This document shows positions 1,775 to 61,498 of a stretch of DNA of 64,000 nt, one piece after another; position 1 is the stretch's first letter; each line of letters starts with the position of its first letter. The notes beneath the pieces were generated by a model, which was not told the DNA's origin, did no database searches, and worked only from the letters and a program-made list of their open reading frames with translations. Origin of the DNA: Mobula hypostoma (lineage: Eukaryota); assembly GCF_963921235.1 (NCBI RefSeq), contig NC_086103.1, forward strand, positions 19,220,001 to 19,284,000, given 5' to 3'. The position numbers were made by a program, and so were the translations under genes.

Positions 1775-2035
1775 CTCTGACTTCCAGATTATATGGTACT
1801 GAAAGCTGGAGAGTGTTCTGATCAACAACACCACATGTCCATTTTCCTCTGTCTCTCTCAGCTTTCTGTACGATCAGACTCAGTGATTTCTCTTCCCCAG
1901 TCAGTGTTTTGTCTCCAACAGTTTCACCGTCTCCGTTGATCCAAACCAGTCTGGATGATGCAGTGACGTCAGACACAGAGCAGCTCAGGGTAACGGTGTC
2001 TCCCTCAGTCACTGTATCAGACGGTTCAGCCGTGA
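1775..2035 (-). CDS. IgSF receptor copy A, D4 exon (C2-like Ig domain with WxC)
   Basis: Acceptor tttcttgtttccacAG, donor GTAAGC, 261 nt, phase 1-1. Motifs VTLSC, LVW and GKWTC. The TM exon of this copy is expected beyond the window start. Confidence 0.93.
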
Positions 2036-2148
2036 CTGTGGAAACAAGAAAAACGTTATTAGTCTCCTTAAAAACAGGAGTGACATACTGCACAAAAGCA
2101 AAATGCTGTGATTTTGGGAAATCTGTTGTCACACATTCTGTCTCCTAC

Positions 2149-2487
2149 CTTTAACTGTGATTAGTGTGATAGTGCTAAATACACTTGTTTCCAGAGTACA
2201 GGTGTAATCTCCTGCATCTTCAAACACCACAGGAAAAACCCTCATACTGAAATTCCAGCCGTTAAAAGGTGTCTCTGTGAGCATCAGTCGATTCACAAAG
2301 TTGTTCTCACTGACATTCACGGGCTGAGATTTCAATGCTGTTGCAATTGTTTTCCACGGACTTTGATGAACATGTGACAGCCAAGTCCAGGCAGCACTGT
2401 TGTAAACAGAATGACTGTAACAGATGAGTTGGAATTCACTGTGATCCGTAACTGAGCGATAAAGTGTGTAACGTTTATCATATCGAT
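2149..2487 (-). CDS. IgSF receptor copy A, D3 exon (V-type Ig domain)
   Basis: Acceptor tcgttcatgcAG, donor GTAGGA, 339 nt, phase 1-1. Motifs FQLIC, AWTW, NFSMRV and EDAGDYTC. Confidence 0.93.
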
Positions 2488-2529
2488 CTGCATGAACGAG
2501 AGGAGAACTCATTAAAATGTTACAATGCC

Positions 2530-3270
2530 ATTCGGGAGGCAGTGATGAGAAGCCGCCATAAAACCATAAAGCATAGGAGCAACATTAGGCCATTCAGCCC
2601 ATCGAGTCTCCTCTGCCATTACACCATGGCAGATTTATTATCCCTCTCAACTCTTCTTCTGTCCATCTTCGATGCCCTGTCTAATTATGAACCTATCACT
2701 TACTACTTTAAATTAATTACACAGATTCCCTACCCTCTGGCGAAGGATTCACCACCCTCTTCATCTCTAAACAGATAACCTTCTATTCTGAGGCTGTGAT
2801 CTCTGATTTTAGACTCTCCCACTATTGGAAACATCCTCTCCGCACCCACTCTGTTCAGCCCTTACAAACTTCGATAGGTTTCAATAAGACCTCCCTCATT
2901 CTTCTAAACTCCAGGGAGGAAAGGCCTCGAACCATCAGATACTCCTCATTCTTAACCCTTTCATTCCCAGAGTCATTCTGATGACACTCCACTAGACCAT
3001 CTGCAAAGCCAGAACATCCTTTCTGAGAGAAGGGACCCAGAATTGCTCACAATTCTCCAAGTCCAGTCTCAATAATGTCTTGTAAAGCCTTGACATCCTT
3101 GCTTTTATATCCTTATCCTCTCAAAATGATTACTAACATTGCATTTACCTTCCTCACCACTTAATCAACCTGAAAGCTAACCTTTAGGGGATCCTGCACA
3201 AGGACGATTCAGCCCCTTTCTTTTTACTTCTGAATTTTGAATTTTCTCCCTGCTTAGAAAATAGTCTATT
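2530..3270 (-). mobile_element. CR1 3' fragment (paralogue at about 51020-51740)
   Basis: The reverse complement matches the CR1 3' ends elsewhere in the window. Confidence 0.7.
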
Positions 3271-3719
3271 CTCCTAATTTGTTTAAGTCACATATTCAGC
3301 TTCAGTTTCTGAATGGACCTCAAGTGCTGCAACATCTCATTGGTCCACACTTGAGACCTAATCTCCACTGAAGCCTGAGTCTGTCATTGAAGCTGGAATC
3401 ACAACAAATACGATAAAGACTTGGCAGGAAGGGTCAGTGAGAGAGAGAATGGTTTGTTGTTCAGTGATGCTCTGTGAACCGGGACCCAGTGCTGAGTGTG
3501 AGTCGGAAGTGCTGGTGGTTGTCGTGTTGACTCCTCCTTCACTGTAACACTTTGACATGAGTAACACTTTAATATCCACCACTGAGTACATGAGTAACAT
3601 TTTAATATCCACCACTGCAGTTGAACATTTACAGTACCGAATTGTGATTATGATTGGTTTTAGTCTCCGAGTTGGAGAATGTTGCGCTGACATATTGAAT
3701 GATCGGTATGATTCCAATC

Positions 3720-4790
3720 AAAACTACGTATGTGAGAATGCTGTTCTTGGACTGCAGTTCACCATTCTAAACTATAATTCCCTCCAGGCTCAACGAGAAG
3801 TTCAGAGACCACAGCCTTCACTCTGCCTTGTGTAACTGGATCCTGGACTTCCTGTCAGATCGCCAGCAGGTGGTAAGAGTGGGCTCCCTCACCTCTGCCA
3901 CTCTGACCCTCAAAACGGGTGTCCCTCAAGACCATGTCCTAACCCCCTCCTTTACTCTCTGTATACCCATGACTGTATGAATGTTAATTAATCTGCTAAT
4001 TAAATTTGCTGATGACACTACACTGATTGGTGTAATCTCAAATAATAGTGAGGTAGCCGACAGAGAAGAGGTCATCACCCTGACACAGTGGTGTCAAGAA
4101 AACAACCTCTCCCTCAATGTTGCAAAAACAAAGGAGCTGGTGGTGGACTACAGAATGAATGCAGACAGGCAAACACCTATAGACATCAATAAATCTGGGG
4201 TTGAGAGGGTGAACAGCTTTAAGTTCCTCGAGATAAACATCAGTGATGATCTCACATGCTCTGTACAAACTGGCTGTGTAGTATAAAACACACAACAACA
4301 CCTCTTTCACCTCAGACCATTGAGGAAGTTTGGTATAGGCCCCCAAATCCGAAGAAATTTCAGCAGAGGCAAAATTGAGAGCGTCCTGACTGGCTGCATA
4401 ACTGCCTTGTAGGAGAACTGTACTTCTCTGAATTGCAGGACTCTGCAGAGCGGTGTGGAAGGCCCAGCGCATCTGTAGATGTGAACTTCCACCTATTCAG
4501 GACATTTGCAAAGACAGGTGTGTAAAAAAGCCCGAAAGACCATTGGGGACCCGAGTCACACCAACCGCAAACTGTTCAGGCAGCTACCATCCGGGAAACT
4601 GTACTGCAGCACAAAAGCCAGGACCAACAGCTTCTTCCAACAGGCCATCAGACTGACTAATTCATGCTGATACAATTGTATTTCTATGTTTTATTGACTG
4701 TCCTGTTGTATATACTATGTATTACAAATTACTATAAATTGCACATTGCACATTTTGATGGACAGGTAATGTAAAGACTTTAACTCCTTG
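3720..4790 (+). mobile_element. Rex1/Babar-type LINE 3' fragment
   Basis: YVRMLFLD and IKFADDTTLIGVIS...WCQENNLSLNVAKTKELVVD, then the 3' tail. The paralogue is at about 52190-53270. Confidence 0.85.
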
Positions 4791-5301
4791 AGTACACAAA
4801 GGATGTAAGAGTTAAAGTCAATTCAATTCAAGTTGTAATGATGTAATTTAAAATTGTTCCCACCGCAGATTTGCTCCTCCTGATCTATGTATTATTTTCT
4901 TTAATGCCCTATAAACCCCAGATCTCAGTCACAGGGTTAAACGGTGGGGAAACAGAACCTTCATTTCAACTCTTCTCTGCCAAACAAAGTGTGACACTAA
5001 TACACTAATGGGACGAGCTTAGATCGGCATGGACCAGTTGTGCTGAAAAGCCTGTTTCCATGCTGTACGACTCCATAGTTTACGGACTGCCAATGTCTCC
5101 TCCTTCATAATGTTGATATGCGTCACGATATCACTTTTCTCTGGCCTGAATTCACTAATTTCCAATTCTTCTGCATTGTAAATATTAATGAGAAATATCC
5201 ATTTAGACCTGGCCATGAACTCTTCCTGTACTATTTTTAACAACCTCCTACCAGACAGATATATTCCAGCCCAATACGTACAGTGAGGTAACAACACTTA
5301 C

Positions 5302-5571
5302 CCATGTCTACAGTAAAGTCTGCTTGCCCTGTTCCAACAATGTTTCCGTTTTCCTGTACTTCACACTGATACAACCTTCCATCCTCCACTGTAACGTGTC
5401 GGACAATCAGATAGACGGTGTTATTCAGGCGGATCTGATCAGTGTTTCTCCTGTTCTGCTGGGATGAGCCCACTGGTTTCCAGTGGAGACCGACGGTATC
5501 TGGGAGTCTGGAGATGGTACAGCTGAGGGTGACGTCACTGCCCATTACAGGTGATCGTGGATTTGCTACAA
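5302..5571 (-). CDS. IgSF receptor copy A, D2 exon (C2-like Ig domain)
   Basis: Acceptor ttctcacAG, donor GTAAGT, 270 nt, phase 1-1. Motifs VTLSC, LHW and EDGRLYQC. Confidence 0.92.
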
Positions 5572-6204
5572 CTGTGAGAAATAAGACCATAAGTCAAAAT
5601 GACACAGAAGCAGAATTAGTCCATTCTGACACTTGCGTCTGCTCGGCCATTCCAACATAGCTGATTTATTTTCTTTCTCAACCCCTTTCATACACCTTCT
5701 CCCTGTAACCTTTCACAACTTTATTAATCAAGAACCCTTATTTAAACCTCTGCTTTAAATGGATCCAGTGACTTGGACTCCACAGCCACCTGTGGCAATG
5801 AATTCCATACGTTCTTCACCCTCTGGCTAAAGAAATTCCTCTTAATCTCTGTTCTAATGGACATTCTTGTAGTCTGAGTCTGTGCCCACTGGTCCTATAC
5901 TCCCCCACTATCGGAAACATCATCTGCACATCTGATCTATCTCAGCCTTTCAATATTTGGTCCAAATATTGGATGGGTGGAGTGAGCAGTAACATGTCCA
6001 ATGATTGGGTTCAAACTGACCTCAGGAGCTGACCGTGATCAGCACTTGTGTCTTGCTACAGGACAGAGATTGTTGGGTCTCCGACACAGAATAACACAAT
6101 GGGCACACAAACTCTCAGTCTGGTTACACCAAATTCAGTGAGACAGAGCAGAGGGAATTAACTCTTTACCACATCCTCCCCGAACCTGATGGAATGTCAG
6201 GGTT

Positions 6205-6932
6205 CAGCTGGCCAGGCGAGGCAACACTTCACTTGTGAGTCTGTTGGGGTCATCTATTGCATCCGGTGCTCCCGGTGCGGCCTCCTCTACATCGGTGAAA
6301 CCCAACACAGATTGGGGGACCACTTTGTCGAGCACCTCCACTCTGTCCGCCACAACAGACAGGACCTCCTGGTTGCCACCCACTTCAACTCTGCTTCACA
6401 TTCCCATTTGGATATGTCCATCCATGGCCTCTTCTACTGCCATGACGATGCCAAACTCAGGTTGGACTTCATATACCGTCTAGGTAGTCTCCAGCCCCTT
6501 GGTATGAATGTTGAATTCTCCCACTTCCAGAAATTCCCTCCCTCTCCCTTCCCCTATCCCTATTTCACTCTGCCCCCTCCCCCAGCTGCCTACTACCTTC
6601 CTCATGGTTCCGCCTCCATCTACTACCCATTGTGTTTTCCCCTATTCCTTCTTCACCTTTCCTGCCTATCACCTCCCTGCCTCCCCTCCCCCACCCCTTT
6701 ATCTTTCCCCTGACTGGTTTTTCACCTGGAACCTACCAGCCTTCTCCTTCCCACCCTCCCCCCACCTTCTTTATAGGGCCTCTGCCCCTTCCATCTTCAG
6801 TACTGCCGAAGGGTTCCGGCCCGAAACGTTGACTGTTCGTTTCCTTGGATGCTGCCCGACCTGCTGAGTTTCTCCAGCGTGTTGTGAGTGTTGCTTTGAC
6901 CCCAGCATCTGCAGAGTATTTTGTGTTTACCT
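6205..6932 (+). mobile_element. Penelope-like element 3' fragment (GIY-YIG endonuclease and tail)
   Basis: GVIYCIRCSRCGLLYIGET...RLGDHFVEH...VATHFN, plus the gaagggttccggcccgaaacg tail. Confidence 0.88.
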
Positions 6933-7077
6933 AAATGAACACAACTTTCTCCCTGTGAGTGTAAATGAGCAGAGAATACAAACCTCACATGATCCCTATA
7001 AAACATTCAGTACTGGAAAGTAAATTATTGATGAAGAGAAACATTTTTTACACTTTTCAAATCTTTGTCCCATTTAC

Positions 7078-7419
7078 CTTTGATCCCAAAAATTTCATAT
7101 TGCTTCAAGATTTCATAACTGGGCTCTCTTTGCACCAAGATGATAGATCCTGCAAATTTAGATGTGGGCTGAGTAATTATCAGATCAATGGTACCAGCCG
7201 TACTGTCCATAGCATGAAAGATGCCATCGTGTTTGAAGTGTATTTCCCAACGTGGGTTCCACCCTCTGGATCCTTCTTTATAAAATGTCACAAGTTGTTG
7301 TGTGCCTTGCTTGTAGCTTGGTTTCCAATCCCAGCCAACAGGGCCATTTCCAGGAATGTCCAGTCCAGTGAAGACAATTTTATCTATCTTATCAAAAATA
7401 TAAAAATGTTTTGGATTTT
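7078..7419 (-). CDS. IgSF receptor copy A, D1 exon: V-like domain lacking both canonical cysteines
   Basis: Acceptor ttttttaacAG, donor GTAAAT, 342 nt, phase 1-1, fully open: NPKHFYIFDK...GPVGWDWKP...QLVTFYK...TIDLIITQP...KFAGSIIL...KQYEIFGIK. Confidence 0.82.
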
Positions 7420-7616
7420 CTGTTAAAAAAGAGAAACAATGAAAATGTTACAGCATGAAATCACAAATGTTTCATTCTATTTCACTGCGTATCAATGTTC
7501 CATTGGTGCAGTATTACTATTTTATCAGTTGATCACAACAAAACCACTGACACAATTAAAATGGTAAGATGGTTCATTACTGTCATATGTACCAAGGTAC
7601 AGGAGGGAAATCTGTA

Positions 7617-7752
7617 CTGTGGGAGGGGTGGTGAGGGAGATACACACTGTGGGAGGGGTGGTGAGGGAGATGCACACTGTGGGAGGGGTAGTGAGGGAGA
7701 TACACATGGTGGGAAGGGTGGTGAGGGAGATACACACTGTGGGAGGGGTGGT
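7617..7752. repeat. 30-bp G-rich minisatellite, about 4.5 units (paralogue at 56067-56202)
   Basis: TGTGGGAGGGGTGGTGAGGGAGATACACAC. Confidence 0.9.
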
Positions 7753-7889
7753 GACTACAGTCATGTATCATTGAAACAAAACAATTGACATTGAAAAGGG
7801 ATGATAGACAAAATTTACTCTGATTTCTCATCTACAGGGGTCAGTATTACCGTGGAGAGCAGGGTAAGAGAAATTGGCAGTGGATGTGC

Positions 7890-10690
7890 TGGTGACACTA
7901 GCTGTGTGATCTTGCTGCTGAAGTGAGTGTGCTGCTGGCATCGTCGATAAGGCAGAGAGCAAAGGATCCTCAATGGAGGCTGCCGGTGGCAACAGGGACA
8001 CGACACCTGACACGATGCTTCAGTGGACAATATGGGATTGTGCCTTGGCTAGATTTGCCAGACATCTGCTAGGTGCAGATTTCCTGTGCACCCAAGGGCC
8101 TGTATTGTGCTGCAGGCTTTCTATGTTTCCATGTTTCTATGCACCAGCCCATGTGAATTCACTCACTTGCTGGGTGAGTTCACAAACCTCAACAAACCCA
8201 CATTTTCCACTATAGTCACAAAGCATGGGGATTGGGCACCACATCTGCACAACTGGCTCACTTGTCCATGCCCGTCCGTGTAGACAAGAGTCAGAGAAGC
8301 TGGCCAGAACAAAAGCTGAGATTGTAAACACGGAAATGCTTGACATTGTACATGGGTCAAATCACCCTCGGGCTTCACCTCCCCATATGGTCACGAAGCC
8401 CGATGGTGGTTGCCGTCCATGTAGTGATTACCACCAACATAATGAGACCACCACACCCAATTATTGCCCAGACCCACATATTCAAGGTTTTTCAGCATGT
8501 TTAGTCATTAAGATGAAATTTTCTAATGTGGACTTACTCAGGAGCTACCATTCATTGCCGACATGCGGTGAGAACATTCCCAAAACTGCATGTTTATGAA
8601 CCTGTCTGGCCTATTTGAGTTTCTGTGCGTGCCACTGGGGCTGAAAATGACATGCCAAATCAACTCTATGTTAAACGATTCAGATGTTCCTTTTGTTTAC
8701 CTCGATGACATTCTTGTTGCCAGTGCATCCAAAACCGAACACTGTTCAAGTGCTTAAGCCAACATTCCACGCTTATTGATCCCGCCAAATGCCTGTTCTG
8801 GTTGTCTACTATCAAATTTCTTGGCCACCTTCTGTCCCCAGCTATCAAGGGCATCACTATTATGGACTTCCACTGCTTCGCACTACTGAAGCACAGAAAG
8901 AGTTCAAAGTATGTTGAATTTCGATCACCATTTAATTCCACGAAGTGCTGAATTTCTGCTCCCCTTGAAAAGTGCCCTTAAAAGCAGAGCCCCAATCACA
9001 TTCTTGAGTGGTCAGCGGACATGATCAGAGCATTTGATGATACTAAACAAGCTCTTTCGAGCATGATTCAACAGGCGCACCAGTTCGCCAATAACCTACA
9101 GCCATCGCTGCTGACTCTTTAGTCTCTGCTGTGTGTGCCCTGCGTGAACAGTTGGTTAGAGGAGTGTGGTAGCCATTTGTGTTCTTCAGCTGGATCCTCT
9201 ATTCCTCTGAGGGATGTTTGACCATGAGCTCCGTGGTCTACATCTGGTCATCTGTCAATTTTGTTTTCTACTGGAGAGTCGGCAGTTTACAGTGTTCAAT
9301 GACCACAAACCTTTTGTGTATGTGATGGCCAAAGGATCAGGCACTTGGTCTGCATGGCAGCAATGCCACCTGGCCTGTATTTTGGAATTCATGATTGACA
9401 TATAGCACATTGAAGGGGAAAATAATGCTGTGGCTGATTGCCTCTCATGGCCCGCCATTGATGCCATACACATCAGGGTTGACTAAGCTGGCATGGCATC
9501 CGACCAAGCTACCGAATAGAGGCTTACAGGATAGAGGTCACGTGCTGAAGAGACGCTGGAGTTTCTCTCCTATCTGATGTCTCAACTGGTTGCCCTCACC
9601 CCATAGTGCCTGCAAACTGGAGGCAGACAGTTTATAATTCCATTCACAGCCTCTCGCAACTTGGCGGGAAGGCTTCACTGAAACTGGTTGCTCTAAAGTT
9701 TGTGTGGCATGGCCTTAGAAAGGTTGTGCGAGCCTGGAGTGCGAGATTAATTGTCATATGCGGGCACCGGCAAAGCTTTCGAGCTCCCAGAGAGATGGTT
9801 TGAAATCATTAATGTAGACCTGGTTAGTCCTCACACCGCCCACCACTGTGGGTTCACACACCTCCTTACCATGGTGGACCACACCACCAGGTGGCTACAG
9901 GTTGTCTCTGGAGCATCAATGACGGCGGTGGACATGGTTTGGGCATTCAACAATAACTGGGTCACTCGTTTCGGGGCCCGACCTGATATTTCTTCTGACC
10001 GCAGTCCCCAAATCACACCCAACTTCTGAGCTGCAGCTCGGTGTTAAACTAGATCACACCATACCATATCACCCGCAACCCAATGGCCTGTGTGAGCAGT
10101 TTCACTATTCCTTAAAGACAGCTCTCAGGGCCCTTCTGATGGTCAAGTATTGGCACGATCATCTCCTCTGGGTCCTCCTGAGTTTCGGGATGGCTCTAAA
10201 ACACGATTTGCTGACCTCCACAGTGAGTTTGTTCATCAGCAGTGGCATTATCTGCGGGTGATTTTATTCCTGATGTCATGACTACTTGGTTGGCTTCTCA
10301 GCAACGATCTGCCTTCCTCAGAGAAATCAGTTCCTTTAATCCTTTTCCTATCTCACACCATGCCAGACAGCTTTACTGGGTTCCAGTTGACCTATGTTCC
10401 ACCTCATTCCTTTTTGTCTGCAATGATGCACATCAATCCCTCCTTAAGCCCTCTTACAATCGTCTATTCTGCATTGGAAAAAGGAGCAAAAAGACTTTTA
10501 TTGTAGTTCGGAAAGTTAAATCTGAATGTAGTTTTGAAGATTGTCTTAAATTAGCCCACAGGACCTGGATGGTTCCACTATCATACCCTCTGCATCACGA
10601 CATGACCATGTGGGTGTCTGCACACCCCAGGACGGATCAGAGACACATTGCTATTCCAACCAAGGCACATAAGACCCAAGCCAGGTGAAT
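7890..10690 (+). mobile_element. Decayed Ty3/gypsy pol (PR-RT-RH-IN order) in intron 1 of copy A
   Basis: Frameshifted fragments: KPDGGCRPC, VYLDDILVAS, FTVFNDHKP, VDLVSP...LLTMVDHTTRW and SSDRSPQ. Confidence 0.88.
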
Positions 10691-10699
10691 CTCACATGT

Positions 10700-11900
10700 T
10701 TTATTCACAAAATCCACACACGCTAGAGAGTCTTACATCAGTTGTATGGAAATTGTTTGAAAATCTTGTTATGGAGGGGGAGTTCTCACATCTGGACAAC
10801 CAACTTTAGGAATAATCAGCATGCCTTGCGTGGGGGCATCTTGTCTTACAAACTTGATGCTGTATACACAGACATGGTAAAGCTTTCAACATGATCCCTA
10901 GTGATCAACTGATACTGAACATAAAACCACATTTGATCTGTGGAGAGTTGGTAGGTGGGATTCGAAATCAGTTTGGCCATAGTTGACAGAGGGAAGTGGT
11001 AGATTGGTGTCAGTCTGACTGGAAGCCTGTTGCCAGTCATGTACCACAATGATCATTGATATATGTCAATAATTTGGAGAAAAATGGAATTTGGTATGTC
11101 AGTGGATTGTGGATAATGAATAAGGTTGTCATAGAATTCAGCAGCTTACAGACCAGTTATAAATTGGGACAGTGTAATGCCTGATGGAATTTAATGCACA
11201 CAAATGTGATGTGTTGATCTTGAGGACATCAATTGCAAGAGGTATATATATAGTAAATGCCATGTCCCACAGGGCTGCTGATGTACACAAGCACCTTGTG
11301 GTACGAGTCCACTGGTCTCTGATAGATTGGTGAAGAGCCTCGCAGTATACTTGCCTTCAATGGTCAGGGTGCTGAGTATAAAAGTCAGCAGGTTGTGTTG
11401 CAGCTGTGTAAACCATTGGTTCATTGGTTACGCCACATCGGAGTGTTGCGTGCTGTTCCAGTCGCAGTGAAACAGAAAGTGTGGACAGTGTAGAGGCTTT
11501 GGAGAGCTGGGAAAGAGTCTCACCTGGATGTAGCTTGAATTAAACAGTATTAGCTATACAGAGAAATTAGACAAATGTATTGCTTTTTTTCCAATGCCAA
11601 GGAGAGATTTTGGAGAAATTTTTAGTTATAAGAGGCATAACTGAAATACTGATTTTCTCAGTGTGTAAATGTGAAACACGAGATGGCATAGCTTTAATGT
11701 GAGAGAGGGAATGTTTAAATGAAACTTATGAGACAAGTTTTTATAAGGAGAGATTAGAGGGGGCCTGGAATTTGCTGCCAGGGAAGTTAGTAGAAGCAGA
11801 TACAGGAGCAATATTGAAGAGGTGTTTAAACAAGCTCGAGACAAGACAGAGGAGGAGAACAATATAGACAATGTGCAGACAGTCATACAGTTTAAATTGG
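10700..11900 (+). mobile_element. Old CR1 RT fragment (paralogue at about 59150-60350)
   Basis: aatcagcatgcc...tgtcttacaaacttga and related CR1 RT-like tracts, heavily decayed. Confidence 0.65.
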
Positions 11901-12992
11901 CATCATGTTTGACATCGACACAGTGGGAAGAATAGCCCATTGCTGTGCTGTCCTGTTCAGTTTCTGAGGACACAAGTATCCCATCTAAAATATATTTATA
12001 ATATTAAGCAATGTGATGGCTCCTCCAAACTCCAGGTAAAGTTGCTGAGATGCTGTTTGTCTTGTGGAAGCTGAAAGAATTTTTACACAGATTGTAAGGT
12101 GTGGAGCTGTGGACATCAAGAGCACATTTGTTTTCTGAATAACCAGTGTATGACTTCAAGAAATTCAAAGTTCAAAGTGAAATATATTATCAGAGTACAT
12201 ACATGTAACCACATACAACCCAGAGATTCTTTTTCTGTGCGCCTACATAGAAAATCTATAGAACAGTAACTGTAAACAGGATCAATGGAGAATAATCTGT
12301 GCAAATGCAGTTATAAATAAATTGCAATAAATAATAAGCATGAAATAGAAAGATAAAAGAGTACTTAAATGTGTGTCGTTATCCCCTTTTGTTCAAGAGC
12401 CTTTTTGTTCAATAAGTAATAATAATATTGAAGCAGCAGTATACCATTCAGCCCATCATTCCTGCTATATCATTCAACAAGATCATGTCTGACCTGACCC
12501 TCAGCACCACTTTCTTCTACTGACCCCATGTTCCATAATTCCTTCAACATCCAGAATGCTATTGATCGCTGTACTTGCTATGACAGAGTGTACACAGCTC
12601 TATACAACTGAAAATCCTGAACAATAACTAGTATACAGAAAAGATCTTTTTTTTTCATTTTACTTGGCCTGACTCTATACACCACAGAATTTTGCATGTT
12701 TTGGTAAGATCATCTTGAACTCTTTTAACCTCTGAATAATTCAGTTCCAGTCCGCTTCACCTGTTTTGCTGAACAATATCCACAGCACCTGAATTGTTGG
12801 AATATCCTTTGTGCACATCTCCATATTACACCCAATACCATCCACATCATTTTCTTTTAACTTCTTGTGTACAACCTTACTGAAGTAACAACTAAATGTC
12901 CAGACACACTGGATCCACAGTCCCTCCTGATATGTACAAGGACTGAAAATGCAGAAAACAACAGTGACTAATCGGTGAGCTAAAGTACTTAC

Positions 12993-13053: not shown

Positions 13054-13068
13054 TTTGCTGCAGCCAGT

Positions 13069-19568: not shown

Positions 19569-19572
19569 TAAG

Positions 19573-44220: not shown

Positions 44221-44269
44221 TTAACAAATGCATTCATTGATGATGACGGCGTTGCCTGAGATGGACTGA

Positions 44270-50496: not shown

Positions 50497-50609
50497 CTGT
50501 GGAAACAAGAAAAACGTTATTAGTCTCCTTAAAAACAGGAGTGACATACTGCACAAAAGCAAAATGCTGTGATTTTGGGAAATCTGTTGTCACACATTCT
50601 GTCTCCTAC

Positions 50610-50948
50610 CTTTAACTGTGATTAGTGTGATAGTGCTAAATACACTTGTTTCCAGAGTACAGGTGTAATCTCCTGCATCTTCAAACACCACAGGAAAAAC
50701 CCTCATACTGAAATTCCAGCCGTTAAAAGGTGTCTCTGTGAGCATCAGTCGATTCACAAAGTGGTTCTCACTGACATTCACGGGCTGAGATTTCAATGCT
50801 GTTGCAATTGTTTTCCACGGACTTTGATGAACATGTGACAGCCAAGTCCAGGCAGCACTGTTGTAAACAGAATGACTGTAACAGATGAGTTGGAATTCAC
50901 TGTGATCCGTAACTGAGCGATAAAGTGTGTAACGTTTATCATATCGAT
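50610..50948 (-). CDS. IgSF receptor copy B, D3 exon
   Basis: 339 nt, phase 1-1, with one difference from copy A (N to H). Confidence 0.93.
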
Positions 50949-53753
50949 CTGCATGAACGAGAGGAGAACTCATTAAAATGTTACAATGCCATTCGGGAGG
51001 CAGTGATGAGAAGCCGCCATAAAACCATAAAGCATAGGAGCAACATTAGGCCATTCAGCCCATCGAGTCTCCTCTGCCATTACACCATGGCAGATTTATT
51101 ATCCCTCTCAACTCTTCTTCTGACTTCTTCTGTTCATCTTCGATGCCCTGTCTAATTATGAACCTATCACTTACTACTTTAAATTAATTACACAGATTCC
51201 CTACCCTCTGGCGAAGGATTCACCACCCTCTTCATCTCTAAACAGATAACCTTCTATTCTGAGGCTGTGATCTCTGATTTTAGACTCTCCCACTATTGGA
51301 AACATCCTCTCCGCACCCACTCTGTTCAGCCCTTACAAACTTCGATAGGTTTCAATGAGACCTCCCTCATTCTTCTAAACTCCAGGGAGGAAAGTCCTCG
51401 AACCATCAGATACTCCTCATTCTTAACCCTTTCATTCCCAGAGTCATTCTGATGACACTCCACTAGACCATCTGCAAAGCCAGAACATCCTTTCTGAGAG
51501 AAGGGACCCAGAATTGCTCACCATTCTCCAAGTCCAGTCTCAATAATGTCTTGTAAAGCCTTGACATCCTGGCTTTTATATCCTTATCCTCTCAAAATGA
51601 TTACTAACATTGCATTTACCTTCCTCACCACTTCATCAACCTGAAAGCTAACCTTTAGGGGATCCTGCACAAGGACGATTCAGCCCCTTTTTACTTCTGA
51701 ATTTTGAGTTTTCTCCCTGCTTAGAAAATGGCCTATTCTCCTAATTTGTTTAAGTCACATATTCAGCTTCAGTTTCTGAATGGACCTCAAGTGCTGCAAC
51801 ATCTCATTGGTCCACACTTGAGACCTAATCTCCACTGAAGCCTGAGTCTGTCATTGAAGCTGGAATCACAACAAATACGATAAAGACTTGGCAGGAAGGG
51901 TTAGCGAGAGAGAGAATGGTTTGTTGTTCAGTGTTGCTCTGTGAACCGGGACCCAGTGCTGAGTGTGAGTCGGAAGTGCTGGTGGTTGTCGTGTTGACTC
52001 CTCCTTCACTGTAACACTTTGACATGAGTAACACTTTAATATCCACCACTGAGTACATGAGTAACATTTTAATATCCACCACTGCAGTTGAACATTTACA
52101 GTACCGAATCGTGATTATGATTGGTTTTAGTCTCCGAGTTGGAGAATGTAGCGCTGACATATTGAATGATCGGTATGATTCCAATCAAAACTACTTATGT
52201 AAGAATGCTGTTCTTGGACTGCAGTTCACCATTCTAAACTATAATTCCCTCCAGGCTCAACGAGAAGTTCAGAGACCACAGCCTTCACTCTGCCTTGTGT
52301 AACTGGATCCTGGACTTCCTGTCAGATCGCCAGCAGGTGGTAAGAGTGGCCATGCTCACCTCTGCCACTCTGACCCTCAAAACGGGTGTCCCTCAAGACT
52401 ATGTCCTAACCCCCTCCTTTACTCTCTGTATACCCATGACTGTATGAATGTTAATTAATCTGCTAATTATATTTGCTGATGACACTACACTGATTGGTGT
52501 AATCTCAAATAATAGTGAGGTAGCCGACAGAGAAGAGGTCATCACCCTGACACAGTGGTGTCAAGAAAACAAACTCTCCCTCAATGTCGCAAAAACAAAG
52601 GAGCTGGTGGTGGACTACAGAATGAATGCAGACAGGCAAACACCTATAGACATCAATAGATCTGGGGTTGAGAGGGTGAACAGCTTTAAGTTCCTCGAGA
52701 TAAACATCAGTGGTGATCTCACATGCTCTGTACAAACTGGCTGTGTAGTATAAAACACACAACAACACCTCTTTCACCTCAGACCGTTGAGGAAGTTTGG
52801 TATAGGCCCCCAAATCCAAAGAAATTTCAGCAGAGGCAAAATTGAGAGCGTCCTGACTGGCTGCATAACTGCCTTGTAGGAGAACTGTACTTCTCTGAAT
52901 TGCAGGACTCTGCAGAGCGGTGTGGAAGGCCCAGCGCATCTGCAGATGTGAACTTCCACCTATTCAGGACATTTGCAAAGACAGGTGTGTAAAAGAGCCC
53001 GAAAGACCATTGGGGACCCGAGTCACACCAACCGCAAACTGTTCAGGCAGCTACCATCCGGGAAACTGTACTGCAGCACAAAAGCCAGGACCAACAGCTT
53101 CTTCCAACAGGCCATCAGACTGACTAATTCATGCTGATACAATTGTATTTCTATGTTTTATTGACTGTCCTGTTGTATGTGTTACAAATTACTATAAATT
53201 GCACATTGCACATTTTGATGGAGAGGTAATGTAAAGACTTTAACTCCTTAAGTACACAAAGGATGTAAGAATTAAAGTCAATTCAATTCAACTTGTAATG
53301 ATGTAATTTGAAATTGTTCCCACCGCAGATTTGCTCGTCCTGATCTATGTATTATTTTCTTTAATGCCCTATAAACCCCAGATCTCAGTCTCAGGGTTAA
53401 ATGGTGGGGAAACAGAACCTTCATTTCAACTCTTCTCTGCCGAACAAAGTGTGACACTAATTGGACGAGCTTAGATCAGCATGGACCAGTTGTGCTGAAA
53501 AGCCTGTTTCCATGCTGTACGACTCCATAGTTTACGGACTGCCAATGTCTCCTCCTTCATAATGTTGATATGCGTCACGTTATCACTTTTCTCTGGCCTG
53601 AATTCACTAATTTCCATTTCTTCTGCATTGTAAATATTAATGAGGAATATCCATTTAGACCTGGCCATGAACTCTTCCTGTACTATTTTTAACAACCTCC
53701 TACCAGACAGATATATTCCAGCCCAATACGTACAGTGAGGTAACAACACTTAC

Positions 53754-54023
53754 CCGTGTCTACAGTAAAGTTTGCTTGCCCTGTTCCAACAATGTTTCCG
53801 TTTTCCTGTACTTCACACTGATACAACTTCTCATCCTCCACTGTAACATGTCTGACCATCAGATAGAGGGTGTTATTCAGGCGGATCTGATCAGTGTTTC
53901 TCCTGTTCTGCTGGGATGAGCCCACTGGTTTCCAGTGGAGACTGACGGTATCTGGGAGTCTGGAGATGGTACAGCTGAGGGTGACGTCACTGCCCTCCAC
54001 AGGTGATCGTGGATTTGCTACAA
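53754..54023 (-). CDS. IgSF receptor copy B, D2 exon
   Basis: 270 nt, phase 1-1, open, with 8 amino-acid differences from copy A. Confidence 0.92.
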
Positions 54024-54654
54024 CTGTGAGAAATAAGACCATAAGTCAAAATGACACAGGAGCAGAATTAGTCCATTCTGACACTTGCGTCTGCTCTGCC
54101 ATTCCAACATAGCTGATTTATTTTCTTTCTCAACCCCTTTCATACACCTTCTCCCTGTAACCTTTCACAACTTTATTAATCAAGAACATTTATTTAAACT
54201 TCTGCTTTAAATGGATCCAGTGACTTGGACTCCACAGCCACCTGTGGCGATGAATTCCATACGTTCTTCACCCTCTGGCTAAAGAAATTCCTCCTCATCT
54301 CTGTTCTATGGGACATTCTTGTAGTCTGAGTCTGTGCCCACTGGTCCTATACTCCCCCACTATCGGAAACATCATCTGCACATCTGATCTATCTCAGCCT
54401 TTCAATATTTGGTCCAAATATTGGATGGGTGGAGTGAGTAGTAACATGTCCAATGATTGGGTTCAAACTGACCTCAGGAGCTGACCGTGATCAGCACATG
54501 TGTCTTGCTACAGGACAGAGATTGTTGGGTCTCCGACACAGAATAACACAATGGGCACACAAACTCTCAGTCTGGTTACACCAAATTCAGTGAGACAGAG
54601 CAGAGGGAATTAACTCTTTACCACATCCCCCCCGAACCTGATGGAATGTCAGGG

Positions 54655-55382
54655 TTCAGCTGGCCAGGTGAGGCAACACTTCACTTGTGAGTCTGTTGGG
54701 GTTATCTATTGCATCCGGTGCTCCCGGTGCGGCCTCCTCTACATCGGTGAAACCCGACACAGATTGGGGGACCACTTTGTCGAGCACCTTCACTCCGTCC
54801 GCCACAACAGACAGGACCTCCCGATTGCCACCCACTTCAACTCTGCTTCACATTCCCATTTGGATATGTCCATCCATGGCCTCTTCTACTGCCATGACGA
54901 GGCCAAACTCAGGTTGGACTTCATATACCGTCTAGGTAGTCTCCAGCCCCTTGGTATGAATGTTGAATTCTCCCACTTCCAGAAATTCCCTCCCCCTCCC
55001 TTCCCCTATTCCTATTTCACTCTGCCCCTCCCCCAGCTGCCTACTACCTTCCTCATGGTTCCGCCTCCATCTACTACCCATTGTGTTTTCCCCTATTCCT
55101 TCTTCACCTTTCCTGCCTATCACCTCCCTGCCTCCCCTCCCACACCCCTTTATCTTCCCCCTTACCGGTTTTTCACCCGGAACCTACCAGCCTTCTCCTT
55201 CCCACCCTCCCCCACCTTCTTTATAGGGCCTCTGCCCCTTCCATCTTCAGTACTGCCGAAGGGTTCCGGCCCAAAACGTTGACTGATCGTTTCCATGGAT
55301 GCTGCCCGACCTGCTGAGTTTCTCCAGCGTGTTGTGAGTGTTGCTTTGACCCCAGCATCTGCAGAGTATTTTGTGTTTACCC
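54655..55382 (+). mobile_element. Penelope-like 3' fragment, copy B
   Basis: Paralogue of 6205-6932. Confidence 0.88.
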
Positions 55383-55527
55383 AAATGAACACAACTTTCT
55401 CCCTGTGAGTGTAAATGAGCAGAGAATACAAACCTCACATGATCCCTATAAAACATTCAGTACTGGAAAGTAAATTATTGATGAAGAGAAACATTTTTTA
55501 CACTTTTCAAATCTTTGTCCCATTTAC

Positions 55528-55869
55528 CTTTGATCCCAAAAATTTCATATTGCTTCAAGATTTCATAACTGGGCTCTCTTTGCACCAAGATGATAGATCC
55601 TGCAAATTTAGATGTGGGCTGAGTAATTATCAGATCAATGGTACCAGCCGTACTGTCCATAGCATGAAAGATGCCATCGTGTTTGAAGTGTATTTCCCAA
55701 CGTGGGTTCCACCCTCTGGATCCTTCTTTATAAAATGTCACAAGTTGTTGTGTGCCTTGCTTGTAGCTTGGTTTCCAATCCCAGCCAACAGGGCCATTTC
55801 CAGGAATGTCCAGTCCAGTGAAGACAATTTTATCTATCTTATCAAAAATATAAAAATGTTTTGGATTTT
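55528..55869 (-). CDS. IgSF receptor copy B, D1 exon (Cys-less V-like domain)
   Basis: I found no nucleotide difference from 7078-7419, and the splice sites are the same. Confidence 0.82.
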
Positions 55870-56339
55870 CTGTTAAAAAAGAGAAACAATGAAAATGTTA
55901 CAGCATGAAATCACAAATGTTTCATTCTATTTCACTGCGTATCAATGTTCCATTGGTGCAGTATTACTATTTTATCAGTTGATCACAACAAAACCACTGA
56001 CACAATTAAAATGGTAAGATGGTTCATTACTGTCATATGTACCAAGGTACAGGAGGGAAATCTGTACTGTGGGAGGGGTGGTGAGGGAGATACACACTGT
56101 GGGAGGGGTGGTGAGGGAGATGCACACTGTGGGAGGGGTAGTGAGGGAGATACACATGGTGGGAAGGGTGGTGAGGGAGATACACACTGTGGGAGGGGTG
56201 GTGACTACAGTCATGTATCATTGAAACAAAACAATTGACATTGAAAAGGGATGATAGACAAAATTTACTCTGATTTCTCATCTACAGGGGTCAGTATTAC
56301 CGTGGAGAGCAGGGTAAGAGAAATTGGCAGTGGATGTGC

Positions 56340-59140
56340 TGGTGACACTAGCTGTGTGATCTTGCTGCTGAAGTGAGTGTGCTGCTGGCATCGTCGATAA
56401 GGCAGAGAGCAAAGGATCCTCAATGGAGGCTGCCGGTGGCAACAGGGACACGACACCTGACACGATGCTTCAGTGGACAATATGGGATTGTGCCTTGGCT
56501 AGATTTGCCAGACATCTGCTAGGTGCAGATTTCCTGTGCACCCAAGGGCCTGTATTGTGCTGCAGGCTTTCTATGTTTCCATGTTTCTATGCACCAGCCC
56601 ATGTGAATTCACTCACTTGCTGGGTGAGTTCACAAACCTCAACAAACCCACATTTTCCACTATAGTCACAAAGCATGGGGATTGGGCACCACATCTGCAC
56701 AACTGGCTCACTTGTCCATGCCCGTCCGTGTAGACAAGAGTCAGAGAAGCTGGCCAGAACAAAAGCTGAGATTGTAAACACGGAAATGCTTGACATTGTA
56801 CATGGGTCAAATCACCCTCGGGCTTCACCTCCCCATATGGTCACGAAGCCCGATGGTGGTTGCCGTCCATGTAGTGATTACCACCAACATAATGAGACCA
56901 CCACACCCAATTATTGCCCAGACCCACATATTCAAGGTTTTTCAGCATGTTTAGTCATTAAGATGAAATTTTCTAATGTGGACTTACTCAGGAGCTACCA
57001 TTCATTGCCGACATGCGGTGAGAACATTCCCAAAACTGCATGTTTATGAACCCGTCTGGCCTATTCGAGTTTCTGTGCGTGCCACTGGGGCTGAAAATGA
57101 CATGCCAAATCAACTCTATGTTAAACGATTCAGATGTTCCTTTTGTTTACCTCGATGACATTCTTGTCGCCAGTGCATCCAAAACCGAACACTGTTCAAG
57201 TGCTTAAGCCAACATTCCACGCTTATTGATCCCGCCAAATGCCTGTTCTGGTTGTCTACTATCAAATTTCTTGGCCACCTTCTGTCCCCAGCTATCAAGG
57301 GCATCACTATTATGGACTTCCACTGCTTCGCACTACTGAAGCACAGAAAGAGTTCAAAGTATGTTGAATTTCGATCACCATTTAATTCCACGAAGTGCTG
57401 AATTTCTGCTCCCCTTGAAAAGTGCCCTTAAAAGCAGAGCCCCAATCACATTCTTGAGTGGTCAGCGGACATGATCAGAGCATTTGATGATACTAAACAA
57501 GCTCTTTCGAGCATGATTCAACAGGCGCACCAGTTCGCCAATAACCTACAGCCATCGCTGCTGACTCTTTAGTCTCTGCTGTGTGTGCCCTGCGTGAACA
57601 GTTGGTTAGAGGAGTGTGGTAGCCATTTGTGTTCTTCAGCTGGATCCTCTATTCCTCTGAGGGATGTTTGACCATGAGCTCCGTGGTCTACATCTGGTCA
57701 TCTGTCAATTTTGTTTTCTACTGGAGAGTCGGCAGTTTACAGTGTTCAATGACCACAAACCTTTTGTGTATGTGATGGCCAAAGGATCAGGCACTTGGTC
57801 TGCATGGCAGCAATGCCACCTGGCCTGTATTTTGGAATTCATGATTGACATACAGCACATTGAAGGGGAAAATAATGCTGTGGCTGATTGCCTCTCATGG
57901 CCCGCCATTGATGCCATACACATCAGGGTTGACTAAGCTGGCATGGCATCCGACCAAGCTACCGAATAGAGGCTTACAGGATAGAGGTCACGTGCTGAAG
58001 AGACGCTGGAGTTTCTCTCCTATCTGATGTCTCAACTGGTTGCCCTCACCCCATAGTGCCTGCAAACTGGAGGCAGACAGTTTATAATTCCATTCACAGC
58101 CTCTCGCAACTTGGCGGGAAGGCTTCACTGAAACTGGTTGCTCTAAAGTTTGTGTGGCATGGCCTTAGAAAAGTTGTGCGAGCCTGGAGTGCGAGATTAA
58201 TTGTCATATGCGGGCACCGGCAAAGCTTTCGAGCTCCCAGAGAGATGGTTTGAAATCATTAATGTAGACCTGGTTAGTCCTCACACCGCCCACCACTGTG
58301 GGTTCACACACCTCCTTACCATGGTGGACCACACCACCAGGTGGCTACAGGTTGTCTCTGGAGCATCAATGACGGCGGTGGACATGGTTTGGGCATTCAA
58401 CAATAACTGGGTCACTCGTTTCGGGGCCCGACCTGATATTTCTTCTGACCGCAGTCCCCAAATCACACCCAACTTCTGAGCTGCAGCTCGGTGTTAAACT
58501 AGATCACACCATACCATATCACCCGCAACCCAATGGCCTGTGTGAGCAGTTTCACTATTCCTTAAAGACAGCTCTCAGGGCCCTTCTGATGGTCAAGTAT
58601 TGGCACGATCATCTCCTCTGGGTCCTCCTGAGTTTCGGGATGGCTCTAAAACACGATTTGCTGACCTCCACAGTGAGTTTGTTCATCAGCAGTGGCATTA
58701 TCTGCGGGTGATTTTATTCCTGATGTCATGACTACTTGGTTGGCTTCTCAGCAACGATCTGCCTTCCTCAGAGAAATCAGTTCCTTTAATCCTTTTCCTA
58801 TCTCACACCATGCCAGACAGCTTTACTGGGTTCCAGTTGACCTATGTTCCACCTCATTCCTTTTTGTCTGCAATGATGCACATCAATCCCTCCTTAAGCC
58901 CTCTTACAATCGTCTATTCTGCATTGGAAAAAGGAGCAAAAAGACTTTTATTGTAGTTCGGAAAGTTAAATCTGAATGTAGTTTTGAAGATTGTCTTAAA
59001 TTAGCCCACAGGACCTGGATGGTTCCACTATCATACCCTCTGCATCACGACATGACCATGTGGGTGTCTGCACACCCCAGGACGGATCAGAGACACATTG
59101 CTATTCCAACCAAGGCACATAAGACCCAAGCCAGGTGAAT
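56340..59140 (+). mobile_element. Decayed Ty3/gypsy pol in intron 1 of copy B
   Basis: Paralogue of 7890-10690. Confidence 0.88.
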
Positions 59141-61437
59141 CTCACATGTTTTATTCACAAAATCCACACACGCTAGAGAGTCTTACATCAGTTGTATGGA
59201 AATTGTTTGAAAATCTTGTTATGGAGGGGGAGTTCTCACATCTGGACAACCAACTTTAGGAATAATCAGCATGCCTTGCGTGGGGGCATCTTGTCTTACA
59301 AACTTGATGCTGTATACACAGACATGGTAAAGCTTTCAACATGATCCCTAGTGATCAACTGATACTGAACATAAAACCACATTTGATCTGTGGAGAGTTG
59401 GTAGGTGGGATTCGAAATCAGTTTGGCCATAGTTGACAGAGGGAAGTGGTAGATTGGTGTCAGTCTGACTGGAAGCCTGTTGCCAGTCATGTACCACAAT
59501 GATCATTGATATATGTCAATAATTTGGAGAAAAATGGAATTTGGTATGTCAGTGGATTGTGGATAATGAATAAGGTTGTCATAGAATTCAGCAGCTTACA
59601 GACCAGTTATAAATTGGGACGGTGTAATGCCTGATGGAATTTAATGCACACAAATGTGATGTGTTGATCTTGAGGACATCAATTGCAAGAGGTATATATA
59701 TAGTAAATGCCATGTCCCACAGGGCTGCTGATGTACACAAGCACCTTGTGGTACGAGTCCACTGGTCTCTGATAGATTGGTGAAGAGCCTCGCAGTATAC
59801 TTGCCTTCAATGGTCAGGGTGCTGAGTATAAAAGTCAGCAGGTTGTGTTGCAGCTGTGTAAACCATTGGTTCATTGGTTACGCCACATCGGAGTGTTGTG
59901 TGCTGTTCCAGTCGCAGTGAAACAGAAAGTGTGGACAGTGTAGAGGCTTTGGAGAGCTGGGAAAGAGTCTCACCTGGATGTAGCTTGAATTAAACAGTAT
60001 TAGCTATACAGAGAAATTAGACAAATGTATTGCTTTTTTTCCAATGCCAAGGAGAGATTTTGGAGAAATTTTTAGTTATAAGAGGCATAACTGAAATACT
60101 GATTTTCTCAGTGTGTAAATGTGAAACACGAGATGGCATAGCTTTAATGTGAGAGAGGGAATGTTTAAATGAAACTTATGAGACAAGTTTTTATAAGGAG
60201 AGATTAGAGGGGGCCTGGAATTTGCTGCCAGGGAAGTTAGTAGAAGCAGATACAGGAGCAACATTGAAGAGGTGTTTAAACAAGCTCGAGACAAGACAGA
60301 GGAGGAGAACAATATAGACAATGTGCAGACAGTCATACAGTTTAAATTGGCATCATGTTTGACATCGACACAGTGGGAAGAATAGCCCATTGCTGTGCTG
60401 TCCTGTTCAGTTTCTGAGGACACAAGTATCCCATCTAAAATATATTTATAATATTAAGCAATGTGATGGCTCCTCCAAACTCCAGGTAAAGTTGCTGAGA
60501 TGCTGTTTGTCTTGTGGAAGCTGAAAGAATTTTTACACAGATTGTAAGGTGTGGAGCTGTGGACATCAAGAGCACATTTGTTTTCTGAATAACCAGTGTA
60601 TGACTTCAAGAAATTCAAAGTTCAAAGTGAAATATATTATCAGAGTACATACATGTAACCACATACAACCCAGAGATTCTTTTTCTGTGCGCCTACATAG
60701 AAAATCTATAGAACAGTAACTGTAAACAGGATCAATGGAGAATAATCTGTGCAAATGCAGTTATAAATAAATTGCAATAAATAATAAGCATGAAATAGAA
60801 AGATAAAAGAGTACTTAAATGTGTGTCGTTATCCCCTTTTGTTCAAGAGCCTTTTTGTTCAATAAGTAATAATAATATTGAAGCAGCAGTATTATTCAGC
60901 CCATCATTCCTGCTATATCATTCAAGATCATGTCTGACCCGACCCTCAGCACCACTTTCTTCTACTGACCCCATGTTCCATAATTCCTTCAACATCCAGA
61001 ATGCTATTGATCGCTGTACTTGCTATGACAGAGTGTACACAGCTCTATACAACTGAAAATCCTGAACAATAACTAGTATACAGAAAAGATCTTTTTTTTT
61101 CATTTTTCTTGGCCTGACTCTATACACCACAGAATTTTGTATGTTTTGGTAAGATCATCTTGAACCCTTTTAACCTCTGAATAATTCAGTTCCAGTCCAC
61201 TTCACCTGTTTTGCTGAACAATATCCACAGCACCTCAATTGTTGGAATATCCTTGGTGCATATCTCCATATTACACCCAATACCATCCACATCATTTTCT
61301 TTTAACTTCTTGTGTACAACCTTACTGAAGGAACAACTAAATGTCCAGACACACTGGATCCACAGTCCCTCCTGGTATGTACAAGCACTGAAAATGCAGA
61401 AAACAACAGTGACTAATGGGTGAGCTAAAGTACTTAC

Positions 61438-61498
61438 TTTGGGTGAAACCAGACTGAAGGAGCGAAACAAATAAACTGAATATCACAAGAGAGCACAT
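61438..61498 (-). CDS. IgSF receptor copy B, leader exon (MCSLVIFSLFVSLLQSGFTQ)
   Basis: Paralogue of 12993-13053, with the ATG and GTAAGT donor conserved. Confidence 0.8.

Follow-up and report, generated by a model that had tools for sequence, protein, structure and literature searches.

Two genes encoding receptors with four immunoglobulin (Ig) domains lie head-to-tail in a 64,000-nucleotide stretch of the genome of the lesser devil ray, Mobula hypostoma (NCBI RefSeq assembly GCF_963921235.1, contig NC_086103.1, positions 19,220,001 to 19,284,000 of the forward strand; hereafter the window). The question they raise is whether they are equivalent copies of one receptor, and how they relate to CD4, LAG-3 and G6F-like. 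An earlier interpretation made from the letters alone (the sequence-only reading) had described them as a tandemly expanded, diversifying family of immune or thrombocyte receptors with a CD4/LAG-3/G6F-like V-C2-V-C2 ectodomain. The present analysis partly supports that interpretation, which was right in outline and missed that the two genes form a predicted inhibitory/activating pair with homogenised ectodomains. Our verdict is that they belong to a family of paired receptors, ancient and as yet undescribed, whose ectodomain is CD4/LAG-3-like.

Both genes, here called A (LOC134348856) and B (LOC134348858), are encoded on the minus strand by phase 1-1 Ig exons, with AG acceptors and GT donors throughout, so that all introns of the two models are GT-AG (Table 1). 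The first six exons of copy B sum to 1377 nt, corresponding to the 459 codons through the transmembrane (TM) segment that had been proposed, and the spliced protein is identical at 459 of 459 residues to XP_062908709.1 (LOC134348858 isoform X1, 484 aa, Mobula hypostoma). The in-window protein of copy A is likewise identical, at 424/424 residues, to XP_062908708.1 (LOC134348856, 576 aa, Mobula hypostoma). RefSeq labels the product of each locus "uncharacterized protein". Both genes lie on one 189.7-Mb record of assembly GCA_963921235.1, and their coding-sequence spans of 22,361 bp for B (equal to 61498-39138) and 29,152 bp for A agree with the exon coordinates; judged from the latter span, gene A extends about 16 kb past the left window edge, and its remaining exons (TM and tail) lie outside the window. 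The two collinear genes and the junctions drawn by the sequence-only reading are those of the public annotation, and the ends it had set, 1775 and 61498, are the last base of the A D4 exon and the ATG of B. The coding exon of gene B at 39215-39138 was absent from its model.

The exons were located by two routes. D2, D3 and D4 were found as open frames with Ig signatures and matches to Pfam Ig models, and the D1 and TM exons by tblastn with homologues that a D3-exon query had retrieved by phmmer. No Pfam model matches the D1 domain. Three open reading frames with a C...W...C pattern (61424-61206, 59989-59644 and 60453-60079) were considered for D1 and rejected, having neither Pfam support nor a workable splice frame. 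A hydrophobicity scan directly 3' of the gene B D4 exon revealed no TM segment; the TM exon lies 5.3 kb downstream. At the last exon of gene B, a CAG/CAG tandem acceptor (39212-39217, minus strand) accounts for the two RefSeq isoforms, X1 (484 aa) and X2 (483 aa, one Gln fewer). The best explanation, which as a whole we hold to be quite probable, takes A and B as real neighbouring genes of the lesser devil ray that are members of an unnamed type I membrane-receptor family.

The two genes part company at their signalling ends. The TM segment of gene B, ITTIAGYLFVKLAVGLGLVYSLM, carries a lysine at position 11 of 23 and is followed by a short, basic tail of 29 aa, RKNRQITPQGCNRRGRARGHRRRAMSHQS, whose final 25 residues are arginine-rich. 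The C-terminus of gene A, known from RefSeq protein XP_062908708.1, has instead an uncharged TM segment, IIGSLVLLVLLLIIILGLVLC, and a tail with the membrane-proximal SHLYSNAVEVQQMQ, a YxN motif not present in gene B, with TIHYGDI and with a C-terminal IIYAQV. Both IHYGDI and IIYAQV fit the consensus of the immunoreceptor tyrosine-based inhibitory motif (ITIM), (S/I/V/L)xYxx(I/V/L). By these signatures A is of inhibitory type and B of activating type, and the two are not the plain, equivalent duplicates they had been taken for.

The same two types recur across the family. When 100 family proteins were classified by motif, 19 were of activating type, with a conserved lysine-containing TM segment W..GYL(F/L)VKL, and 35 of inhibitory type, with IHYxxI and (V/I)IYAQI; the remainder were fragments or unclear. 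Both tail types are present in sharks (Pristiophorus, Heptranchias, Scyliorhinus), rays (Mobula, Hypanus, Hemitrygon, Pristis) and skates, indicating that both signalling modules are old and conserved. A possible trace of the relationship between them lies about 200 nt upstream of the lysine TM exon of gene B, where an open frame (45119-45208), RVEYTLKMINIIINRSLFLPFILILSHLLC, resembles the inhibitory stalk/TM exon RVNYTNIVIIGSLVLLLIIILGLVLC (tblastn E 0.042); it is also the top match in the window to a hidden Markov model of inhibitory TM segments, at an E-value of 0.45. On these two values the relic is not significant by itself. Should this candidate relic be real, the activating gene would descend from a gene with an inhibitory-type TM exon.

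Against this divergence at the signalling ends stands the near-identity of the ectodomains, which are 97% identical over 424 aa. In coding sequence, 20 of 1273 positions differ, producing 13 amino-acid differences, none of them in D1. Divergence between the copies is strongly mosaic: 0.16% in a 5.5-kb tract and 0.3% in a second, 1-kb tract, 2.2% at 2855-6854 (copy A coordinates), 3-7% in the sequence 3' of D4 and 8% in the 5' flank, where values run from 5 to 11%, the heterogeneity being significant at p = 6e-24 (Fisher's test, 5.5-kb tract versus 2.2% tract). Purifying selection cannot explain the 5.5-kb tract, because it consists mostly of intron and includes transposon-derived sequence; it is most simply explained by gene conversion or unequal exchange in the recent past. 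The ratio of nonsynonymous to synonymous substitution rates (dN/dS, Nei-Gojobori) comes to 0.67 for the whole and 0.68 for D2, and replacements are not in significant excess. Mosaic divergence and this ratio point to gene conversion, not to the diversification that the sequence-only reading had assumed.

The pattern is repeated in other species. A maximum-likelihood tree of 37 family ectodomains contains seven sister pairs that join an activating with an inhibitory member of a single species, supported at 100/95 to 100/100 (two pairs in M. hypostoma and one each in M. birostris, Hypanus sabinus, Rhinoraja longicauda, Heptranchias perlo and Pristiophorus japonicus). On this tree, tail type has to change 11 times, which is no fewer than after shuffling of the labels; identity is 87-97% within activating/inhibitory pairs, compared with 77-80% between M. 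hypostoma paralogues of one type. Within each pair, the ectodomains thus undergo concerted evolution, while the signalling exons retain identities that are ancient.

These observations suggest a mechanism in which recurrent gene conversion would hold the ectodomains of A and B alike while the flanks and signalling exons remain distinct. The ITIM-like motifs of A would be expected to recruit SH2-domain phosphatases, and the TM lysine of B could pair with an acidic TM residue of a DAP12-type adaptor bearing an ITAM (immunoreceptor tyrosine-based activation motif). From near-identical ectodomains and distinct signalling ends it would follow that the two receptors see the same ligand and give opposite signals, presumably on immune cells.

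The architecture of the shared ectodomain was examined at the level of profiles and of predicted structure. The order V-C2-V-C2 is consistent with exon sizes, cysteine spacing, Pfam matches (V-set for D3; Ig_3/ig for D2 and D4) and an AlphaFold2 model. A profile comparison of D1D2 with D3D4 (hhalign) is collinear, with a probability of 98.5% and an E-value of 3.9e-15, and pairs WEW with WTW, F.nAG with FEDAG.Y.C, the KV junctions with each other and YxC with WxC; the ectodomain thus derives from the duplication of a V-C2 unit. D1 is free of cysteine in all family members, bony-fish homologues included. Across 37 members, W403 of the D4 motif KWTC is nearly invariant and C405 invariant, and Y202 and C204 of the D2 motif LYQC are nearly invariant. 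The D4 motif GKWTC noted earlier is present in both copies, and the WxC hallmark of CD4 and LAG-3 is found in D4 alone, D2 having YxC.

The AlphaFold2 model, built from a 37-sequence alignment (predicted local distance difference test, pLDDT, 82; predicted template modelling score, pTM, 0.73), comprises four beta-sandwich domains and a TM helix. Crystal structures of CD4 show rigid D1D2 and D3D4 rods in which the last V strand runs into the first C2 strand. In the predicted ray structure, single strands assigned by DSSP (123-138 and 326-341) likewise cross the D1/D2 and D3/D4 junctions. The four-Ig, CD4/LAG-3-like architecture put forward earlier is borne out by structural searches with this model: against the PDB, Foldseek returned four-domain CD4 first (7t0r_A, 1.4e-16) and LAG-3 second (8dgg_A, 5e-16), and against the Swiss-Prot AlphaFold models the top 10 were all CD4, followed by LAG-3. 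The four top matches by VIA-align were CD4 D1-D4, with Z 17.3-14.8 over 316-328 residues. Modelled D3D4 superposes on rat CD4 D3D4 at 2.2 A over 168 residues and on human CD4 D1D2 at 2.7-3.0 A over about 175/177 residues (VIA-align), so the same inter-domain geometry is predicted. The ectodomain is accordingly predicted to fold as two CD4-like rigid rods.

As had been anticipated, the family is multigene. At least seven loci lie on the same M. hypostoma chromosome, many are found in each chondrichthyan searched, and members are present in all chondrichthyan genomes represented, often as runs of consecutive locus numbers. They include sharks (Scyliorhinus, Chiloscyllium, Carcharodon, Cetorhinus, Rhincodon, Heterodontus, Heptranchias, Pristiophorus), batoids (Pristis, Narcine, Amblyraja, Leucoraja, Rhinoraja, Hypanus, Hemitrygon, Mobula) and the chimaera Callorhinchus. 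Distant members were found in coelacanth, bichir, sturgeon, paddlefish, eels, tarpon, salmonids and cyprinids, and afdb_clusters holds one further member, from a bamboo shark. Several RefSeq models are very long and contain two to five D3 matches each, among them proteins of Scyliorhinus canicula (P0001, 1710 aa), Anguilla rostrata (P0002, 2139 aa) and Mobula (P0005, P0092 and P0093, 963-992 aa). They are probably annotation fusions of adjacent tandem family genes, which makes locus counts taken from protein lists uncertain.

The suggestion that the family is uncharacterised also stands. Database names are 'uncharacterized', 'hypothetical' or the generic 'Ig-like domain-containing', with incidental assignments as CD276 homolog, VCAM1-like or CEACAM5-like. 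Searches that return protein names, run with chondrichthyan, sturgeon and eel queries, gave 'uncharacterized' names and no named G6F-like relative. No published description or name of the family was found in the literature; 'several CD4/LAG3-like molecules' are mentioned in elephant shark (PMC6238376), which may or may not include the ray family.

Several considerations weigh against the explanation set out so far. The RefSeq models are predictions, and no transcriptome contigs carrying the A or B proteins were found. The assignment of gene A to the inhibitory type rests on a RefSeq protein whose TM and tail exons lie outside the window, and the TM lysine and ITIM-like motifs are sequence signatures of a predicted function. 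The AlphaFold2 model may lean on CD4 structures from its training, and sequence identity to CD4 and LAG-3 is weak, at about 15%. In sequence searches neither CD4 nor LAG-3 stood out: when the family profile was compared with the PDB, pIgR, titin, LAG-3 and CEA matched at about 1e-10 and CD4 at 6e-8; with D3D4 alone, CD276 (1.9e-9) and LAG-3 (about 1e-8) scored about equally, and CD4 came at 5e-4. D1D2 alone matched just NCAM and antibody constant domains. A small chance of an assembly artefact, weighed below, also counts against it.

The alternative that survives best makes the family the cartilaginous-fish counterpart of G6F/G6F-like, acting on thrombocytes instead of lymphoid or myeloid cells, in which case its paired nature could still hold. 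Teleost G6fL, a type I receptor, combines four Ig domains and a TM segment with a conserved YxN motif and an ITAM, and it marks thrombocytes (PMC3528668); four Ig domains and a single TM segment are common to it and the ray receptors. In the ESM Atlas, a shape search placed two 'g6f-like' clusters first and CD4 after them, these matches coming without alignment or E-value, and a feature search with the ray protein placed g6f-like clusters in the top ten; with a sturgeon homologue (P0029) as query, g6f-like took the top two ranks and LY6G6F rank 15. Bichir and sturgeon homologues end in motifs of the Grb2-binding YxN kind, with the form IYEN(V/C) (IYDNVENIYENC and ENIYENV), and many inhibitory-type tails of rays and sharks conserve LYSNxxEIQQMQ, which also contains YxN, a likeness in motif to G6F. 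The signalling motif of G6fL, the ITAM (PMC3528668), is missing: Yxx[LIV]-6..12-Yxx[LIV] was not found in the tails examined, and the tyrosines of the gene A tail lie 17 or more residues apart. The teleost homologues identified by sequence, cyprinids included, are all 'uncharacterized' and none is named g6f-like, which suggests a separate teleost lineage, and Ig_LY6G6F had no match to the family in the Pfam copy searched. We therefore regard this alternative as unlikely, if worth pursuing; kinship with G6F-like and a thrombocyte role are only a lead.

A second possibility concerns ancestry. The family could be a surviving sister or ancestral-type lineage of CD4/LAG-3, perhaps of G6F too, in which a cluster predating the split of cartilaginous and bony fishes supplied one tandem activating/inhibitory pair that became CD4, the class II co-receptor, and its brake LAG-3. 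Under that scenario, members might bind MHC (major histocompatibility complex) class II-like or related ligands through the disulphide-free D1. We find the scenario doubtful. What can be said is that in architecture and predicted fold we class the family as CD4/LAG-3-like, one feature that defines CD4/LAG-3 membership, WxC in both D2 and D4, being absent: D4 alone has WxC, and D2 has YxC in nearly all members.

That A and B might be simple recent tandem duplicates of equal function under diversifying selection appears very improbable. The D2 exon has indeed diverged more than any other, by 13 nt and 8 aa. Its dN/dS is not significant, however, and its divergence is near that of the flanking introns; D1 is identical between the copies, and the tails are of opposite types.

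The likeness to CD4 invites the further thought that the ray genes are orthologues of CD4 and/or LAG-3, or recent expansions of them, since structural comparison over four domains and the TM segment ranks CD4 first and LAG-3 next, the domain order and the WxC in D4 are shared, and LAG-3 and CD4 too form a tandem pair with opposing signalling ends (PMC10768021). Takizawa et al. identified shark CD4 and LAG-3 elsewhere, as one gene each, in tandem within a conserved region, with WxC in strand F of D2 and D4, no D1 intron, and tail motifs of their own, Cx(C/H) in CD4 and (F/Y)xxL(D/E) in LAG-3 (PMC10768021). Neither motif occurs in the A and B tails, and the count of at least seven loci in M. hypostoma contrasts with one gene each for CD4 and LAG-3. 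CD4-specific Pfam models do not match convincingly either: C2-set PF05790 appeared in 2 of 37 members, weakly (0.005), and the CD4-extracel and CD4 tail models are not among the 25 families listed of the 44 matched. With YxC in D2 and identity to CD4 of about 15%, we give orthology hardly any credence, and the earlier view that this is not CD4 itself holds.

Finally, the idea that the second copy is an assembly artefact, such as an uncollapsed haplotype placed in tandem with only one gene in reality, can draw on the great length of the near-identical tracts (9 mismatches across 5.5 kb) and is nonetheless extremely unlikely given divergence that ranges from 0.16% to 8-11% in a mosaic, indels in the flanks, different 3' ends with different TM and tail types in A and B, 34 kb of unique sequence between the copies, and the same activating/inhibitory sister pairs in the assemblies of other species.

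Table 1. Coordinates of the receptor exons, duplicated segments and near-identical tracts, numbered from the first letter of the window
Feature	Position	Strand	Description and evidence
Gene B (LOC134348858) exon 1	61438..61498	-	ATG and signal peptide MCSLVIFSLFVSLLQSGFTQ, phase-1 donor; protein identical to RefSeq
Gene B D1 exon	55528..55869	-	V-like, no cysteine, 342 nt, phase 1-1; tblastn with family proteins, splice sites, AlphaFold2 beta sandwich
Gene B D2 exon	53754..54023	-	C2/I-type Ig, YQC (not WxC) in strand F; Pfam Ig_3 8.5e-10
Gene B D3 exon	50610..50948	-	V-type Ig (C...W...DAGDYTC); Pfam V-set; phmmer query that retrieved the family
Gene B D4 exon	50236..50496	-	C2-type Ig with GKWTC; Pfam Ig_3/ig
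Gene B stalk and TM exon	44819..44922	-	Encodes VRSLPDSWITTIAGYLFVKLAVGLGLVYSLMRKNR, with mid-membrane lysine; phase 1 to 0
Gene B last coding exon	39138..39215	-	QITPQGCNRRGRARGHRRRAMSHQS and stop; tblastn of RefSeq protein tail
Gene A (LOC134348856) exon 1	12993..13053	-	Signal peptide MSSLLIFSLFVSLLQSGFTQ
Gene A D1 exon	7078..7419	-	Nucleotide-identical to the B D1 exon
Gene A D2 exon	5302..5571	-	13 nt and 8 aa differences from B; most diverged exon
Gene A D3 exon	2149..2487	-	1 nt difference from B
Gene A D4 exon	1775..2035	-	GKWTC
Candidate decayed inhibitory-type TM exon	45119..45208	-	About 200 nt upstream of the B lysine TM exon; weak evidence
Duplicated segment, copy B	48362..62654	-	5' flank, signal, D1, D2, D3 and D4 exons and 1.9 kb 3' of D4; blastn, MAFFT divergence profile
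Duplicated segment, copy A	1..14239	-	Homology up to the left window edge; blastn, MAFFT divergence profile
Near-identical tract	6855..12354 (partner 55305-60804)	.	0.16% divergence (9 mismatches across 5.5 kb); spans D1 and the greater part of intron 1, with transposon-derived sequence
Second near-identical tract	1865..2854 (partner 50326-51325)	.	D3 and D4; 3 mismatches in 1 kb (0.3%)

The two genes sit in one large direct repeat, with both arms on the same strand, in a window sequence that contains no N. Self-alignment by blastn gave 97.6% identity over 12.9 kb between 1328-14239 and 49788-62654, and 88.9% between 1-1502 and 48362-49858. The offset of 48.46 kb agrees with the period of about 48.4 kb estimated earlier. 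The homology had been thought to extend to both window edges; it does reach the left edge, and on the right it stops at 14239/62654, 1.35 kb before the window end. A tandem repeat of 29-30 bp (…CACCCCTCTGTCACATGT…) lies just 3' of D4 in both copies (1327-1479 in A, 49699-49940 in B), and its different expansion in A and B largely accounts for the gap-rich segment of 88.9% identity.

The approximately 34 kb of unique sequence between the copies contains a long terminal repeat (LTR) retroelement, other transposon debris and a minisatellite, and no cellular gene other than A and B was found in the window. The retroelement (18710-23604, plus strand) occupies part of the 26-kb spacer between the end of gene B and the start of gene A; its LTRs (18710-19568 and 22746-23604) are 859 bp long and 98.7% identical, and its open frame of 968-984 aa has a coiled, Glu/Arg-rich N-terminal part. 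The minisatellite (46106-46716; 17.5 copies of a 35-bp unit, 90% match) lies in the gene B intron between D4 and the TM exon. Both genes carry in intron 1 a tandem repeat with 4.6 copies of a 30-bp unit, the same in A and B and located inside the homogenised tract (7616-7754 and 56066-56204), as well as pol-like transposon open frames with integrase- and reverse transcriptase-like stretches on the opposite strand (8216-10685 and 56666-59135, plus), which are virtually identical between copies A and B.

Vertebrate innate immunity makes recurrent use of paired activating and inhibitory receptors, and to our knowledge very few have been described in cartilaginous fishes. The family is a testable candidate for the kind of receptor cluster that gave rise to the class II co-receptor system or to the thrombocyte receptor G6F-like, because its predicted ectodomain is built to the CD4/LAG-3 plan, and those two molecules likewise form a tandem pair with opposing signals. 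About 100 proteins now called 'uncharacterized' or mislabelled as CD276, VCAM1-like or CEACAM5-like could also receive a common name and a predicted signalling mode.

Set beside known systems, the ray receptors resemble G6fL in having four Ig domains, a TM segment and, in the inhibitory-type tails, a cytoplasmic YxN motif, and g6f-like is their nearest ESM Atlas cluster by shape and among the nearest by features; they differ, in a comparison made with G6fL by description, in lacking an ITAM, which in G6F-like is split over two exons, in having paired lysine-TM and ITIM forms, and in that their teleost homologues are unnamed loci. Thrombocyte expression, a collagen response and an MHC-linked gene location are further traits of the G6F/G6F-like group. 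With CD4 and LAG-3 they share the V-C2-V-C2 ectodomain derived from a duplicated V-C2 unit, the rigid rods with a continuous strand (for the ray, in the predicted model), WxC in strand F of D4, one exon per domain as in shark CD4/LAG-3 (PMC10768021), and tandem genes with opposing signalling ends, and both are the best structural matches to the ray model. They are set apart from them by YxC in D2, a D1 without a disulphide, about 15% identity, many loci per genome, and tails without Cx(C/H) or (F/Y)xxL(D/E), such that signalling would use a TM lysine or classic ITIMs. In addition, the ectodomains of the ray partners are homogenised, whereas those of CD4 and LAG-3 have long diverged. CD276 (B7-H3, 4Ig) also has V-C repeats and is the best single-sequence PDB match for D3D4 (1.9e-9), and NCBI names a few family fragments 'CD276 antigen homolog', but it is not in the top four-domain structural matches.

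Also comparable are the paired activating/inhibitory Ig families, including KIR, LILR/PIR, SIRP and CD300, together with NITR and LITR of bony fish. As generally understood, these are multigene and clustered, with adjacent genes whose ectodomains are nearly identical, an ITIM-bearing partner alongside a short-tailed partner with a charged TM segment, and gene conversion or concerted evolution of the ectodomains, all of which have counterparts in the ray pair. The ray family differs from them in its predicted ectodomain, a CD4-like V-C2-V-C2 rod pair rather than a string of C2 domains or a single V domain, and in the conservation of its tail types across sharks, rays and skates, so that its pairing appears to be old and not re-invented in each lineage.

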